Source: Orbicella franksi
Taxonomy: Eukaryota
Length of the DNA: 64,000 bases
Reading direction: 5' to 3'
Assembly (NCBI GenBank): GCA_964199315.1
Contig: OZ116710.1
Span: 19,282,001-19,346,000, forward strand
Positions 28,126 to 51,711 of the stretch are shown piece by piece. The stretch's first letter is position 1. Each line of letters begins with the position of its first letter. A program made the position numbers and the translations under genes. Below the pieces are notes generated by a model. The model had not been told where the DNA came from. It ran no database searches and worked only from the letters and a program-made list of their open reading frames with translations.

Positions 28126-28762
28126 TAAATGATAGCAATAAGTAAAAATATAAACAAGTAATAAGCTTTTGAAATAAACTTAAGTGTTTCCTTTCTTCCT
28201 TTTCATCAATCACAGTTTCCTTGGAAGTTTTTTTATCTTCGTGCTTCAGATCATTGTTTCTAAACTCGATCTATGCTTTCGTGATGTTCGTTAAATCAAG
28301 GCGGCAAAAGCATGATTCTTATCACAATTTCTTCAGAATCATTTGCATCGTTTGCGTAAGACAGTGATTGAATAAATTTTGTAAATTTACCACATAAGTC
28401 TCACCTGATTCACCGAAATATCACACTTAGTACTTTTCAGTAGAAAAAAAGGGAATTGCTGGTTCGGTGCGTTTCTTGTTAAACTTTCTTTTATTTTTGT
28501 TCAGCTGGCAGCTGTAAGTTTCGAAATACTTCTTGATGTGTCTGGATGCACGTGCCCTAATTCACGTGCTTCGGGCTGTGGAAACAGTATGTGAGTTGTT
28601 TGGTTATAGATTGAGCTCATTAGTATCTTTTATCTTTGGCTGATAAGAAAGCGAGGAAATGTAATATTAATCTCAGTATTGAAAAGGGCGATGTCATGTC
28701 ACGTTTAATCAACTCGCTTCAGCTACATGAAAAATCGTTATCGTTTTATCTAGCCAGTTCAC

Positions 28763-28770
28763 TATATAAG
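28763..28770 (+). promoter_or_regulatory. TATA box candidate for A6
   Basis: TATATAAG about 200 bp upstream of the ATG at 28964. Confidence 0.45.
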
Positions 28771-28963
28771 GGGGAAAATGTTGCCCTGAAGAGTTTAAGT
28801 CCAGCGCTTTGGTAGAATCAAATTCGACTGCGACTGCTGATGCAACGCTTGGTCTGTTGTCAAACTACAACTGAACATAGTTCACTTTTGAGGTGCCGAC
28901 TACGTTGAGCGTACAACTCTGATTTGAAGTAACCTTGGGTTTTTGAATCGTCAGGGAAGTAGT

Positions 28964-29467
28964 ATGTGTCGATTTACTGGTTCAAAGCACAGAGACTATT
29001 CCCCGAGTCGTTCAACAACGATGTCTTACTGGCGTCGATTGCCCACAATTTATGAGGCTACTGATGTTGAAATGGCTGAAGAGACTGCAGCAGGCGAAAA
29101 GAGCGAACAGCAACATGTCATTGAAACAGAACAGCTGGGGGAGTACGGAATCATGTTGCCCCTTACCAAAAAGAACAAACGATCTAAACCAAGAAGGCAA
29201 AAAAATGCGAGATGCATTGTTCCTTCGTTTATTAAACCCGACTTTACAGAAGCAGATGCATCGCGGTCATTCCAGCAAATTCAAGATGAGTGGAGACACT
29301 TGTTAAGTACGCCATATTCTGACTTTTTCCCACAGGACATGAAATCGTCATTTATAGACAACAGCTTTACACTTTCAAGTAAGAAAACGCTCGGGAAAAT
29401 ACCAAACAAAGATGCTCAAGCTTGCAAGTTTAGCGAAATCGCTGCCTGGCTAGAGTTTTTTGGATGA
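28964..29467 (+). CDS. Family member A6, 167 aa (MCRF ... RRLPTIYE ... YSDFFP ... IAAWLEFFG*)
   Basis: The track start is TTG; the first ATG is at 28964. Motifs are present, with the central motif in variant form. Confidence 0.85.
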   Translation: MCRFTGSKHRDYSPSRSTTMSYWRRLPTIYEATDVEMAEETAAGEKSEQQHVIETEQLGEYGIMLPLTKKNKRSKPRRQKNARCIVPSFIKPDFTEADASRSFQQIQDEWRHLLSTPYSDFFPQDMKSSFIDNSFTLSSKKTLGKIPNKDAQACKFSEIAAWLEFFG

Positions 29468-30224
29468 TAAATCTTTACCAAGGTAGCAGTGAATAGAAAT
29501 CAAAATTAATAATTTATTGACATTGATGATTCTTCATTTTTCCTTCAGCAAGGAATTGACCTTTGAAGGCCTCATATGCTAGATAAACCGTTCAGGCCAA
29601 ACAAAATTGCCGCCTTGTTTACAAAGAAGAGACAGAAACTTGACACTGACTGAGTTGAATTAGTCAATCGCAGAAGGGTCTTGGGAAAAACAAATGAGTC
29701 GAGGCGTGTAGCAATTGTTTGACTTTGTTTGATGATTTAAATATCAACGCTGTGTATCAAAAGTACTGATGAAAAATACATAAAACAAAGGTTTCCCCTT
29801 CAAATCCACAAATTATGTATTTGTACATCAAGTTATGCTCTTAAAGTATTCAATTTTATCGATTTCATTAGAAATTTGGGGTCAAAATCGTCAATACTGG
29901 GCCAGACCGAAGATCGAGATTGAAACTTAACTACGTGATTGTTAATTTTAGAAACATTAATTTACTTTGTCATATCGAGCCTACTGTCCTTTATACTGTT
30001 TTATTAAATGTGTTGTAAACTAAGAATACATTTAAGTGGATGCCTCTTTCTATTGACTGCCTGAAACGTCAACCCTGTATTGCAATAGACTAGTTGTGGT
30101 GTTTCACCTCTGGTGCTTTCCGCAAAAGTTGTCAATTTTTTATCGGGTGCTGATGGAGTAATTGTATTTTAACATAACGGATACTTTTGTAAGAGAAAAG
30201 CGTTTAGAAATAAATGCTGTCGGA

Positions 30225-30385
30225 TTGAAGTTCGTCGATAGAGCACTTCATCGGTATCATTGAAGTCATGGGTTCGAATCACGTTCAATTCTGAATTTTT
30301 TTCAGGCCTTGTCTTTCATTGTTTAATATTTTTTTTCTAACTGCGTGCGATGATATTTCATATACTGAATATTTCATATTTTCAC
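30225..30385 (+). mobile_element. tRNA-derived SINE relic
   Basis: B-box GGTTCGAATC at 30271-30280, preceded by the A-box-like tagagcacttcatcggtatc and followed by ctgaattttttcagg. There is no intact tRNA cloverleaf. Confidence 0.55.
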
Positions 30386-31617
30386 TGGCAAAGTTTAATT
30401 GCTGTTCTTAGAACTCACTGCCATATATTTTCTCTCTTTCCTTCTTTTAATATATCTCGGTTATTTACAAAAAATATAAATTACTGACGCCTTTAAAGAA
30501 GCCTTACTGTATTCTTTATTATTTTTAAAGTTCTTAATGAAATCTTCGTGAAGGCGGATCAGTGTGTGTGTGTGACTGATATTAATTACTGATTTTATTC
30601 AGTTTCCTACTTTGATGATTTAAACAATGTCTATGTAGTTTGTTAAAAAAATTGACTCTAAACATAATACTACGCTTTTTTTCGACTACTTGGGTAAAGA
30701 TCAAAGCGGCTAAATCTTGTCCAAAAACACTCGACAGAGCCTTTTTTCCCTTATCTATTTTTCTGTGCGTAGGAAATTTAGAACAGCTTAAACCTCAGCT
30801 GTAACATGTCGAGGTATAACCAATCTACTTATTTATGTTCATAGCTCTCTTCTTTGAAACAAACAAACGACACCTCATAAAAAAATATAAAACCAAATAT
30901 ACAATTACAACAAAAAAATTCTAAAAAACAAAAGAAAGCAGAATAAATTAACTTTAACATACTGTAAACCAAACAACCATCGACAAATTTAATGTACGTA
31001 ATACAATGAGGAGGCAAACACTGAGACGGAATAATTCGTAAACATGGATTGTACTGGCTTGAAAAAGTAAATTCCAGAGCTTGATCCATCCATGTGTTAA
31101 AAATGTGTTAAAGGACAAAATAGCTGGGTAAAATTGAAAACAAAAAAGAAAGCATAAAAATAGACCGAATTGGAATGAAGGCGATCTTTCGCTTCTGAAT
31201 TTGAATATGAACGCTCTGGAAATTTACTAAATTAATTGATTTATTTATTTATTGAAGTATTTTTTTGGCTGCTCGCTTTGCATATGTTCCTACCGTGCGA
31301 CTTCTCACGTACAGCAGTGGAGATTACTATAAAAGGACAACAATCACCGACAGCGGAAATCGGAGTACATTGAATATGTCAAATACGTCCATCAACAATC
31401 GGAACACAAAGTTATCTTTTGTTGTTTTTAAGCTGCAAGGAGTAAGCTTGAGAGAAAAAAAAAATCCCAATACGATTAGAAGTCTTTGTGAAGAAAGATA
31501 TGTCTGTTGTGTTAGCCTTGTTGTCGGGCAAAAAAAGGGATCTTAAAAGAAGTTGAAAGTAAAAAATAAGTCCATCAAATTTTGAATTAATTCAAATCAT
31601 TTGCACGCTCTCCCACT

Positions 31618-31620
<3 letters not shown>

Positions 31621-31688
<68 letters not shown>
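31621..31688. repeat. (TA)34 microsatellite
   Basis: Uninterrupted TA run, about 500 bp upstream of A7. Confidence 0.97.
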
Positions 31689-31692
<4 letters not shown>

Positions 31693-32091
31693 AAAATTCT
31701 GATGAAAGAGCGAGCGAATGAATACGACGCAGAGAAAAAGACAACACTCCTTTGGTTTCCACGTTTGTTTTTGTCAAGCTTTAAATGACAAAAGGGGTAC
31801 GTGCCATGCATGCTGCTTGATGTTACTCAACTGTAGTCAAAACACCTAAGAAAAGAACAGTGGCCTTCTAGATTGATTCAGCTAAATTTGAACAACGATT
31901 GAGATGTTTGGACGTAAAAAAAACTAAGGTTCACATTAAGCCCAGACAAGTCTCCAATAATGGTAAAATTGGTTTTGAAATCATTATCAATATCCGTGCA
32001 TTAGACGCCATTATTGTCATGAAGTGCATCATATGTTGTCAAATTGTTCTGTTTTGTGATATATATACATTTATTTTGATTAAACTTATGG

Positions 32092-32099
32092 TATATAAA
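32092..32099 (+). promoter_or_regulatory. TATA box candidate for A7
   Basis: TATATAAA about 95 bp upstream of the ATG at 32189. Confidence 0.5.
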
Positions 32100-32188
32100 C
32101 ATGCGAATGCTCATTTCAGTATCTTATTAAGGTTTGTTTTTTTGAAGAGGCTGGGATCAGCGGGTGGAAAGCTCTCCTCAGATTCAGA

Positions 32189-32674
32189 ATGTGTAGGTTT
32201 TGCAGACACCTTGGAAAAATGCGTGCTACTTATCAAGGCAGAATTCAGACTAGGCGGAGAATCGCTTGCCTTCCTACTATTTTTGAAGCGGTAAACGAAG
32301 AGATAGGTACACTGAACAATACTGATGATTCGAGGTTACCGTTGCACCAGCGTTGTGAATATAAAAGGGAAGCAAAGGAGAAGAATGATCGTGTGGGAAA
32401 GGTTCTGTGCAAGGCTACAAGCCGAACCATGGTATTAAGGATGGACATTGGAGCGACTACGAGAACGATTACTCAATGCAACACGCACATGCGGACAGTC
32501 TACCCGGATTTTTTTCCCGAAACGACATTCTGTAGCAGCAGTATTTCAATGCAAAGTACAGGAGTTTTTAACCAAAACGCTTGCTTGGGAATAAAGCTTC
32601 TCAAAATCGGTGGAAAACGAGAATGTTTTGAAAAACAAAGAGGAATTGCCGCCTGGCTTAAGTTTTTTGGCTAA
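32189..32674 (+). CDS. Family member A7, 161 aa (MCRF ... LPTIFE ... VYPDFFP ... IAAWLKFFG*)
   Basis: ATG start, intact ORF, all three motifs present. Confidence 0.88.
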   Translation: MCRFCRHLGKMRATYQGRIQTRRRIACLPTIFEAVNEEIGTLNNTDDSRLPLHQRCEYKREAKEKNDRVGKVLCKATSRTMVLRMDIGATTRTITQCNTHMRTVYPDFFPETTFCSSSISMQSTGVFNQNACLGIKLLKIGGKRECFEKQRGIAAWLKFFG

Positions 32675-33506
32675 GAATGCGTCTAGCGTATTATGCAAAA
32701 CTTGTTGCCGGATCAACAAACAAACCTGGCAGGTGTAGAATTGTCGAAAAATCTTTTTCCATCCAGCGTTTTATGCTGAGGAATAGGATTGTTAATGTCA
32801 TTTTAGTAGTAGTAGCAATAGCTGAAGTAGCAGTAAGACTCGTTGTTGTTTATTAAATCCGTCGTCTGGCTCTAATTTACTTTTCTGATAAAACAGAAAA
32901 CTTTGTTATGGGGTGCAATTAATTTGATTTGTATTGGGCAGGTTGTGATGGGCATAAAAGAGATATTTTTGTACAGAAAACGTGCTGTTTACCTCGCTCT
33001 AATTTGCGAAAACTTAATTTTCTTAAAAGAAACTGAATTACCTCCGTTTCAGGGGTTTCTCAATAAATAGGAAGAAATAGGTTTTAACCACGATCGAGGC
33101 AACTTGCGTAGATTCTATAATTACAAACAATGCAATGAGCTCCACGCAAACAACGTTGTTTGCGCAAATTCTCACAATCGCCCATCACAAAATTTCAATT
33201 TCTGTTATTTTTTGAACGCGCCTCTTTTCGCTTAAGAAATTAATGACCTATAGTGATTCATGTTCGAGTGAGATCGTTTCATGCTATATAAAATGAGGTA
33301 AACAGGGTGCGAAGCACAGTGCTAAATATTAATCATAAAATTTGATTTATAAAGCGCTTATCTATTTGATACCAATTTTTACTCATTTGTATTAATTCGC
33401 CATTTCACCCATTTTCCTTGATTGAGAGCGTTGCAAAAATCAACAAAACATTCCAACTCAGGAGTTATTCCAACTTTCACCCAGTTCCATTGTAATTTGA
33501 TAGTCC

Positions 33507-34021
33507 ATGTGCTGATTTGCCGCTTCGTCGGGAAGAGACCACTCTGAGGACAAGTGCCTCAGTGCCTTCTGACAGCGAATATTCGCTTAAGCACTGGTAG
33601 AATTTCCGATATTGGTTTCCCGATGACAGGACAGCGAGAGTAGTCCGAAAGTTACCGCGCCATGACTGCGTGATCAGCTGCTTAGCAACTTCGACAGGAA
33701 GACTGCGAGTTCAGTCCGATCTCGGAGGTCTGAATTCGTGGTAAACGTGTGCTTGGTATCTCACCGAGACTGTGAATGACTACTGAGTGAACAAAACAAT
33801 ACAGTGATGTCAGAGTGAGTCCTTCAGTAACGGTAAACTTACTAATGATATCTCGGGCTTCGCAGAACTGCAACAGTGATAACCTAGCAAACGACTTAAA
33901 AAAAAAAACACTGCTACAACTAAAGGTTGCAGACAACAAGCCACGTTGCTATTTCATTTTCACATCGACGCGGAAGAAATCCAGCATTGAACTTCATTAT
34001 AATTTCCTGAAGTACTTTTAA
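33507..34021 (+). pseudogene. Family member A7b-psi, decayed paralogue of A6/A7
   Basis: It reads MC*FAASSGRDHS...F*QR against A6 MCRFTGSKHRDYS...YWRR (CGA to TGA, TGG to TGA). It ends FLKYF* against WLKFFG*, the length is similar, and TATATAAAA lies at 33285-33293. The middle is frameshifted and poorly alignable. Confidence 0.6.
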
Positions 34022-49238: not shown

Positions 49239-51711
49239 ATGATTGTTATTTGTTTTCAACATTGAATTGTGATCGACTTTCAGTTTCTAGTGCCGCGAAG
49301 GAAATTGTCAAATAGGCGTCAAACTTGTTTTGATGTTCCTTTAACTCTTCATACGAACACTTTGAAGTGAAATAAATTTGGAAGATCGAATAAAAAAGGC
49401 TCGAGTTTGCTAATTTGACCATACTGTTGTCATAAAGGTATTCGTTAATCAGCCTTCTTTTCAGATTTTCTCCAAATAACAGTGTCTTCAACACACTTTT
49501 AATTCGCCGGAACTAAATAGTTTTCGAGGCGATTTTCGATTCTGATGATCTCAAAAGCGGGAAAGAGATTATTTTGGGGGGCGATACGAGTATCAGTTAT
49601 TCAAAATCGACGTACGAGATTGAACTCAGTCAAAGCATGTTCATTAACAACATGAATAATAATTTCTATCAACTAAAGTTTATGCATACATTCTACCGAT
49701 ACTGAGGGTGTTGATCCGTGTGTGTGTATTCATTTTAGACGGACATAATGTCAAAAATATTTCAAGACCTAAGGTTGACTGAATTAGAATGCGATCAAGT
49801 CCTCTCATGGTCTTAGAGCAGATCGAGCTCATCGTTTTGCATTTTTAATGATACTGAGAGCTTTCTTTAATGAAAATGAAAACCGAAGTCGAAAGATTAT
49901 ATTTTCAACAAGACCGTCGTTATTTACTTTAAAGTTAAATCCGATATAAATTTTTTCCTCCACAAAAAGACCTTGCAAAACGCCTGAAACTTAGCTGGAG
50001 TACATAAGCTACTATATGTAATCAATAAGTTACGCTTGCATTAAATCCTTTTTTTATATTTTGTTTATACATGGTAACCAACGAGGCCAGCCACAAATCT
50101 TGTTGAACTTTAAATTTTAACGTGAAACTCTTAATAGCGTCTACATAGTGCATTTTCAATCTAGGATTTAAGAGGATTAAATCTCTTTTGACAGGTTGAA
50201 AATAAAGTCGGGAGGTTTTAATTGGTTGTTTAGGCGTGCATTTTGAAATGTGCCGAATGGTTTCGTCCAAACATTAATCTGCCTGATGTTGCTAGCACAG
50301 AGAGTCGATAAGACATATTAATCAATCAAACATGTTTTTGCATTTTTATCATGCAGTGTTGTGATTATAAGATACTGGAATTCAAATAACTTTATAAGAA
50401 CAGTTGATTGTTTACTAGATTCGACTTGCTTCCAAACACTTTTAAATGTTAAAACACTTTTCGAACTTCCAATTGCCGATACCAAAAGTACAGTTTTATT
50501 TGTCTTTTTTCGTGCATGATCCAATACGTATACGTCATACCATTGTGTACAACAAAAATGCCACCTACCCTCATATCTGATGAATTTATCATTTCTATAT
50601 CTTGCTCTCCTTATTTTCCTTTCATTCTATTCAAAATAGCAAAAAATATCACTTTGGCCTAAATTTCCTTATAACTTGTTGATGAAAAGAAAAAAAAGGC
50701 TCCTATGCCCTGGCCAGCCACGGCATATTTATATGCTTACGTTTTTTCCGCGGCCGGTAAAAAATTCACTTTCAACGAGGAAGTTAATAAGCCGAAATAC
50801 TTTTGCTATTTATCTTGTTTTCCTTTACTTTGGAATTTGTCGATATGAGGCTTTTTTTTTCATTGTGCTTTGTCTTGCAAGTTCAACGGTGTCATTTTCG
50901 TTGGTCCACTTGTTTGGCAATTTTCCGTTAACAATAAAACGATTAATTGTTCTCCTCGAAAGGTATAGCTTATAAGTTGCAGTTTTCAGCCGGCAAGTTG
51001 TTTTTAACGGATGGTCACTTTCACTTCTGTGCATTCTCTCCTGTAAATCCTTTCACCCAATGATTAACACAAAAAGAATGAGCTTGAAATGTACCGACGT
51101 TTTCATTACAAAGTTAACCCCTCTAGGCCTACTTTCACTTGCTATCGTGACTTTCGTGGGCAGTATTTAGGCTTTTTTTAAAGCCGACGGAAGTATTGTA
51201 AAATCTTTCCTCGATGAAATTATTCTTTACTAATATGGTTTGTACCGCATTTTTACCGATTTTTTTCCATTAAAAATACTGGTATATAGGTTAACAGCTT
51301 TTCCAGCTTCGTTTTACATCAAAACTAATGCAAATGTCTAAATTCCGTGGGTGAAAAAGAATATCTTTCCTGTTTTAAAGCTGGAAAAAATAACATTACC
51401 AAGTGCCATTTATTTTTCGTTTCCCGTTAGTGCTCAAAACATGTCTGACAAATTTGGCTTCTGGGTAAAGTATGACGTGCGCGATGACGACTGATGTGGA
51501 GTCGATACACTTGTTCCTTAAATTTCCATACATACGAAATACATAGCAGCATTCTGTGAAATTCATTAAAAAAATGGAATGGACTATGTCAATAGCTGTT
51601 CAAATATAAGAAGTAGCTGAGTTTAATATATAGAAATATACGTAAGATGCTGAATATCTATATTGTGAAAGATGTCCCAGAACTCATTGGACTGTTTATT
51701 CTACTTAGCCT

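Follow-up and report, generated by a model that had tools for sequence, protein, structure and literature searches.

The 64,000-nucleotide stretch of the coral Orbicella franksi genome analysed here (assembly GCA_964199315.1, contig OZ116710.1, positions 19,282,001 to 19,346,000; hereafter the window, in whose numbering all unprefixed coordinates are given) carries a tandem array of intronless open reading frames (ORFs) of 110-186 codons on both strands, which have three motif islands in common: an N-proximal LxxIxE, a mid-protein [FYL]P[DE]FF and a C-terminal W[LM]x[FLY][FY]G. Sequencing runs containing this DNA bear the label 'coral metagenome', and a related scaffold derives from a Tara metagenome. 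Two intronless genes on the forward strand, A6 (28964-29467, 167 codons and a stop; product MCRFTGSK...AAWLEFFG) and A7 (32189-32674, 161 codons and a stop; product MCRFCRHL...AAWLKFFG), encode proteins that begin with Met-Cys-Arg-Phe, a candidate N-terminal Cys degron (28964-28975 in A6, 32189-32200 in A7, both on the forward strand). The sequence-only reading of this DNA had described the two products as sharing this start while being barely alignable elsewhere, and the description is accurate. The first eight codons are ATG TGT CGA TTT ACT GGT TCA AAG in A6 and ATG TGT AGG TTT TGC AGA CAC CTT in A7, these two starts are the only MCRF strings in the six frames of the window against 0.32 expected by chance, and the proteins are 28-30% identical. 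The Arg3 codons, CGA and AGG, differ at two bases. Because blastn aligns the A6 and A7 DNA only at the C-terminal motif, the duplication must be old, and the common start is no remnant of a recent copy. The ratio of nonsynonymous to synonymous divergence (dN/dS) is about 0.3 for A6 against its orthologues and 0.44 for A7 against locus L001 (0.3-0.5 overall), which indicates that both genes are coding and moderately constrained. No usable match to a known family was obtained for either in Pfam, NCBIfam, a profile search of the PDB or the ESM Atlas, and a profile search of the coral's own genome found no family members beyond A6 and A7. A6 and A7 are old, intronless, transcribed paralogues belonging to a family of small, mostly disordered, motif-built proteins that appears to be restricted to corals and previously undescribed.

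Raw polyA RNA sequencing reads (run X24) cover A6 without a break from about 28800 to 30350, with no joints and hence no intron seen; the binned depth outlines an approximate forward-strand transcript, imprecise at its ends, that comprises a 5' untranslated region (5'UTR), the coding sequence and a 3'UTR of about 0.9 kb. Coverage begins in the bin 28791-28987, and 10-11 reads cross both 28911 and 28963, the base before the A6 ATG, so that the A6 mRNA includes the Met-Cys (MC) codons, and the reads do not bear out an A6 transcript that starts downstream of them. Contigs assembled from RNA libraries (Logan) reach a depth of 45-60 over A6 and A7 vs 2-8 in the flanks, the A7 contig (X1) spanning 31933-32934 at a depth of 45.6; such contigs outrun the read-defined transcript and cannot define transcript ends. 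Run X22 yielded no reads over this DNA. On the forward strand, a TATA box (TATATAAG, 28763-28770), likely the core promoter, stands 201 nucleotides 5' of the A6 ATG and another (TATATAAA, 32092-32099) 97 nucleotides 5' of the A7 ATG. A TATA box recurs 154-201 nucleotides 5' of the A6 ATG in 5/5 species examined and 76-111 nucleotides 5' of the A7 ATG in four species. In the window no ATG lies between the predicted transcription start of A7 and its MC codons, and 32189 is the first start codon past the upstream in-frame stop. The 2-7 in-frame sense codons upstream of MC contain no ATG at any of the five A6 loci or at the A7 locus of L001. The MCRF codons of A6 are invariant across the four runs examined. 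The use of an ATG further downstream, an alternative entertained earlier, is unlikely: the more distant orthologues have Leu, Pro or Val in place of Met20 of A6, and the following Met comes after the invariant LPTIxE.

A search of 5.8 billion proteins returned 29 homologous clusters for A6 and 19 for A7, and a profile search of 1.84 billion representatives (50% clustering level) matched only 13 clusters. Conservation of Cys2 in orthologues, which the sequence-only reading had left to be checked, is borne out: Met-Cys-Arg (MCR) followed by F or G opens each of the 24 A6 clusters whose N-terminus is intact, at identities down to 44%, 7/7 full-length 50%-level representatives likewise start with MCR, and among 13 loci read as DNA, ATG-TGY-(Arg/Lys) is present at all 13 and in frame at 12. 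Nearly all relatives have Arg at position 3, and P0032, P0042, P0048 and L002 have Lys there. Over the 13 loci the codons themselves turn over, Cys being written TGT or TGC and Arg CGA, CGC, CGT, AGG or AGA, with one Lys AAG. Synonymous divergence (dS) between lineages exceeds 1 or is saturated, and the A6 5'UTRs cannot be aligned among distant species. Such synonymous change of the Cys and Arg codons amid saturated synonymous sites points to constraint on the protein and not on the nucleotides. The average residue identity between deep lineages is 35-54%, yet Cys2 and Arg3 are retained in A6, in A7 and in single-copy relatives. In a weighted A6+A7 alignment of 31 sequences they rank 19-20 of 167 positions, preceded only by the LPTIxE, DFF and WLxFFG islands, R10 and one gap-dominated column.

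On the A7 side, ATG TGY AGR is in frame at L001, L010, L011, L008 and L009 and frameshifted only in L002/L003, and the deep A7 orthologues that lie beside deep A6 orthologues (L008, L009) start with MCR(H/F). One member of the A7 lineage (P0048) has lost about 14 residues just after the start and retains MCK. An apparent loss of Cys2 in A7 database proteins that begin at a downstream Met was rejected as a gene-caller artefact, since the DNA of L001, L010 and L011 carries ATG TGY AGG TTT in frame upstream of the annotated Met; this check by DNA covered those three loci and left out the A6 entries P0010 and P0011, whose upstream sequence was unread. Going by the sequences compared, we are highly confident that the MCR start is conserved in the A6/A7 family. 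This start is the first in-frame ATG, lies within the mRNA in the case of A6 and is under purifying selection on the protein.

Besides the MCR start, the conserved islands of A6 and A7 are LPTI[YF]E, PY(A/S)DFFP and the C-terminal IAAWL(E/K)FFG. The first of these meets the consensus [LMFI]xx[ILV]xE of the LxxIxE motif that docks to PP2A-B56 (PMC7108865). It reads LPTIYE in A6 (29039-29056, forward strand), where acidic residues come next and where L26, P27, T28, I29 and E31 are invariant throughout the 31-sequence alignment, and LPTIFE in A7 (32270-32287, forward strand), where it is invariant in 20/20 A7 orthologues. On the strength of this invariant motif match, A6 and A7 may be putative PP2A-B56 ligands. 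An AlphaFold2 model built on the 31 sequences renders A6 as mostly disordered, with a mean predicted local distance difference test score (pLDDT) of 57. The predicted helices of at least five residues are 103-121, at whose end lies the mid-protein island YSDFFP (29315-29332, forward strand; Y118, F121 and P123 invariant or nearly so), and 149-166, which runs into the C-terminal WLEFFG (29447-29464, forward strand; W162, F165, F166 and G167 invariant; mean pLDDT of 161-167, 82). Residues 1-28, with a pLDDT of about 53, have no secondary structure in the model, so that the A6 N-terminus is predicted to be accessible and unstructured, and Lys8 lies close to the Cys.

The residues that follow Cys2 place both proteins in the class favoured by the enzymes of the N-terminal Cys degradation pathway. 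The best substrates of human ADO have a basic or aromatic residue directly behind the N-terminal Cys, and the acetyltransferase NatA favours acidic residues, Ser or Thr at this position and barely acts on basic or aromatic contexts (PMC11199558); in an N-terminome screen, the peptides stabilised by loss of ATE1 were enriched for MCR, MCK, MCH and MCF (PMC12377780). A6 continues Cys-Arg-Phe with Lys, His and Arg and no acidic residue before position 11, and A7 reads Cys-Arg-Phe-Cys-Arg-His, both of the favoured ADO/ATE1 kind. Profile searches of the genome identified an exon of the PCO_ADO family (PF07847, 51.7 bits; one exon read) that contains IPLHDHPGM, which we take to be the iron-binding His-x-His region of ADO, an ATE_C region (PF04377, 58.6 bits) and four UBR-box regions (zf-UBR, PF02207). 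By these matches, the coral genome encodes ADO, ATE1 and UBR-box proteins.

If the start works as such a degron, methionine aminopeptidase would remove Met1 and expose Cys2, Arg3 and Phe4 would disfavour acetylation by NatA, and the coral ADO dioxygenase would use O2 to oxidise the N-terminal Cys, whereupon ATE1 would attach Arg and UBR-box ligases would deliver A6 and A7 to the proteasome. Both proteins would then turn over rapidly in oxygenated tissue and build up in hypoxia and, should LPTI[YF]E dock PP2A-B56, the level of this phosphatase ligand would track oxygen. Symbiotic cnidarian tissue is reported to go through wide daily swings between hyperoxia and hypoxia (PMC5695583). Oxygen-dependent turnover through an N-terminal Cys degron is, in our tentative judgement, the most likely mechanism behind the A6 and A7 starts. 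The fuller proposal, that these are the first cnidarian N-terminal-Cys oxygen-sensor substrates, two disordered, coral-restricted proteins that dock PP2A-B56 and whose abundance follows day-night oxygen via ADO, ATE1 and UBR, is possible but we consider it rather doubtful.

Several known systems offer comparisons. Like substrates of the RGS type, A6 and A7 combine Met-Cys and a basic residue (MCK/MCR) with an orthologue-conserved Cys2, a flexible N-terminus and a context preferred by ADO/ATE1 and avoided by NatA; unlike RGS proteins, they have no RGS domain or sequence relation to them and are small disordered linear-motif proteins, so far from corals only. IL-32 (MCF start), IP6K1 and other human MC-peptides stabilised by ATE1 knockout also have an aromatic or basic residue behind the N-terminal Cys, and they illustrate that unrelated proteins can gain such a degron; those cases come from experiments in human cells, whereas A6 and A7 are known from conservation and context (PMC11199558, PMC12377780). 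The plant group VII ERFs (MCGGAI start), substrates of PCO, likewise form a paralogous family with a conserved N-terminal Cys in organisms exposed to recurrent hypoxia, and their oxidase, like coral ADO, is a PCO_ADO family member (PF07847), but they differ from A6 and A7 in the residues after Cys, in protein class and in kingdom. With the LxxIxE-type PP2A-B56 ligands BubR1, RepoMan and KIF4A the coral proteins share a motif, invariant as LPTI[YF]E, in a disordered region; unlike those ligands, they are placed by motif match. We know of no B56 ligand that pairs LxxIxE with an N-terminal Cys degron.

Several observations weigh against reading the start as an oxygen-dependent degron. In two independent records (L002:5978-6003 and L003:1793-1818) a 10-nucleotide deletion puts the MC start of A7 out of frame while the rest of the gene is intact, so that Cys2 is dispensable in the L002/L003 lineage; the old start survives there as ATG TGT AAG TTT in a 7-codon upstream ORF (uORF), MCKFTDT-stop, whose stop overlaps the new start (TGATG). 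One relative (P0045) has Thr after Cys. The entire N-terminal block of the A6 orthologues (MCRFTGSKHRDYSPSRS) is conserved, beyond Cys-Arg, so the Cys could be one part of a more extensive motif for binding or modification. The substrate rules applied above derive from human ADO, NatA and ATE1 and not from cnidarian enzymes, and many human MC peptides that are degrons in reporters are unregulated as full-length proteins (PMC11199558). As regards the start codon, transcription of A7 is documented only by RNA-library contigs and one raw read pair; P0021 and the A7 locus of L009 have in-frame upstream ATGs that may serve as starts; and the A6 5'UTR of the window bears a uORF that is not conserved in distant species. 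The latter (28840-28908, forward strand) is out of frame and has 22 codons and a stop in the predicted 5'UTR; its ATG stands at -124 in the window, there is one at -113 in L001, and none is present in the predicted 5'UTR of L007 or L008.

Among the other explanations of Cys2, it might be a site of S-acylation (palmitoylation), as the sequence-only reading had already suggested, that tethers the proteins to a membrane, with the basic and hydrophobic neighbours aiding membrane contact. A7 has Cys2-Arg-Phe-Cys5 followed by a basic stretch, and distant A7-like proteins carry several Cys within their first 15 residues, but the A6 N-terminus has a single Cys, is hydrophilic (TGSKHRDYSPSRS) and has no predicted amphipathic helix. 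We consider S-acylation unlikely to be what keeps Cys2, and it would not exclude a degron, as the two could coexist; in RGS4 and RGS16, palmitoylation and the Cys degron do coexist. Cys2-Arg3 might instead be kept for another role at the protein level, either within an N-terminal docking or phospho-regulated block (MCRF...HRDYSPSRS) or as a metal or redox ligand together with downstream Cys and His. Residues 1-17 of A6 are indeed conserved together (R10 is retained at 0.87 and R16 at 0.77 when A6 and A7 are aligned jointly), and the distant A7-like proteins begin with a Cys/His-rich MCR(F/H)A(D/N)(N/K)CDS..NSC.HRDH. However, past residue 4 A6 and the window A7 are wholly unlike, MCR(F) being what they have in common, and P0048 retains MCK without the block, so that residues 1-3 behave as a separate unit; this explanation, too, seems to us improbable.

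A less probable account still is that Cys2 has no special role and that the MC start was inherited and tolerated in a short N-terminal tail. MC starts are found in roughly 1-2% of animal proteins, and the L002/L003 lineage dropped the MC start and kept the gene. Against this stand the retention of Cys2 and Arg3 in A6, A7 and single-copy relatives at the identities and synonymous saturation given above, and the under-representation of MC starts in proteomes, which is reported to reflect selection against them (PMC12377780). Conservation of the RNA or of the translation start, as an initiation context or a regulatory uORF, and not of the protein N-terminus is very improbable: ATG TGT AAG TTT does persist as a uORF overlapping the new start in L002/L003, and the A7 5'UTR immediately upstream (ggattcaga) is conserved in several species, but the third positions of the Cys2 and Arg3 codons vary freely (TGT/TGC; five Arg codons) and the amino acids stay although the A6 5'UTRs of distant species are unalignable.

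ADO-dependent degradation of N-terminal-Cys proteins is a fast, transcription-independent oxygen sensor for which, to our knowledge, few endogenous substrates have been reported, all of them vertebrate or, via PCO, plant proteins. Each day reef corals move from hyperoxia into hypoxia, and deoxygenation is a contributor to bleaching. Our literature search found no paper tying ADO or the N-degron pathway to corals. As far as sequence can tell, A6 and A7 are credible, well-founded candidates for a known kind of regulation in a new coral family. If the proposed mechanism is true, corals would have a fast, HIF-independent oxygen response that links oxygen directly to phosphatase targeting. This candidate pair makes it testable whether cnidarians use the ADO sensor and on which substrates, and the A7 of L002/L003, naturally Cys2-less, offers a usable comparison. 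The family also represents a set of unannotated disordered proteins, built from motifs and possibly able to dock phosphatases.

The sequence-only reading had also put forward a third instance of the start, in a pseudogene at 33507 beginning MC*F. The letters ATG TGC TGA TTT are present (33507-33518, forward strand), but neither the pseudogene nor the third instance withstands scrutiny. No remnant of LxxIxE, PDFF or WLxFFG was found downstream in any frame, tblastn gave no family match at E<=10 and blastn only noise, and the family hidden Markov model reached just 1.0 bit, confined to codons 1-20. Chance alone would give 0.31 MC*F strings per window, 26/100 simulated sequences held at least one, and the closest (sister) species, which aligns through the site at 86% identity, reads ATA CAC TGA TTT, with neither an ATG nor a Cys codon. 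By hand count, 25 of the first 39 nucleotides are identical to the A6 5' end. With no homology past four codons, a chance-level string and a sister-species site without ATG or Cys, a decayed member of the A6/A7 family was rejected here; the string is most likely due to chance, at best the relic of a very ancient 5' end, and it neither counts as a third, independent instance nor adds anything on the N-degron question. A further string, MCRMVSSKH followed by a stop (50248-50274), matches the A6 N-terminus at 6/9 residues (E 8.6). It was likewise rejected as a family N-terminus, as no family motif follows downstream, and is probably a chance match.

Several minor features of the family may be recorded as well. 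In A6 orthologues the segment HRDYSPSRS (residues 9-17, 28988-29014) is conserved; rich in Ser, Pro and Arg, it looks like a phosphorylation site cluster. The distant A7-like proteins P0052 and P0053 (L008:12168-12230 and L009:5369-5430) have the Cys/His-rich N-terminus MCR.A..CDS..NSC.HRDH, which could bind metal and whose HRD(Y/H) echoes the A6 block KHRDYSPSRS. In two more distant corals, the 10 kb flanking each side of P0049 (L013:10001-10537) and of P0050 (L012:10001-10477) turned up no second MC-type gene, and these single-copy loci may represent the state that preceded the A6/A7 duplication. P0049 has an N-terminus like that of A6 and ends like A7, in AAWLKFFG, and a homologue search with the divergent P0050 returned P0050 alone.

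Within the window, the base before the A6 ATG (28963) is T, and it is G in 11/11 X24 reads and in the X1 and X3 contigs; X1 additionally has a 4-nucleotide insertion, AGTC, after 28957. The polyA-library contig that covers A6 in X1 (28490-31513) reaches about 1.2 kb past the A6 3' end indicated by the reads of the other run, which may be due to read-through, to DNA present in the library or to a 3'UTR of greater length. Between A6 and A7, positions 31612-31700 are taken up by a long (TA/ATAT)n microsatellite. Finally, in proteins from other assemblies (P0018, P0022 and P0056) the window's +1-frame ORF 29052-29306 is fused to the A6 frame, or the reverse; the frame junction of P0018 falls at or near the A-run 29201-29207 inside A6, and these fusions may be true frameshifted alleles or else errors of assembly or at homopolymers.

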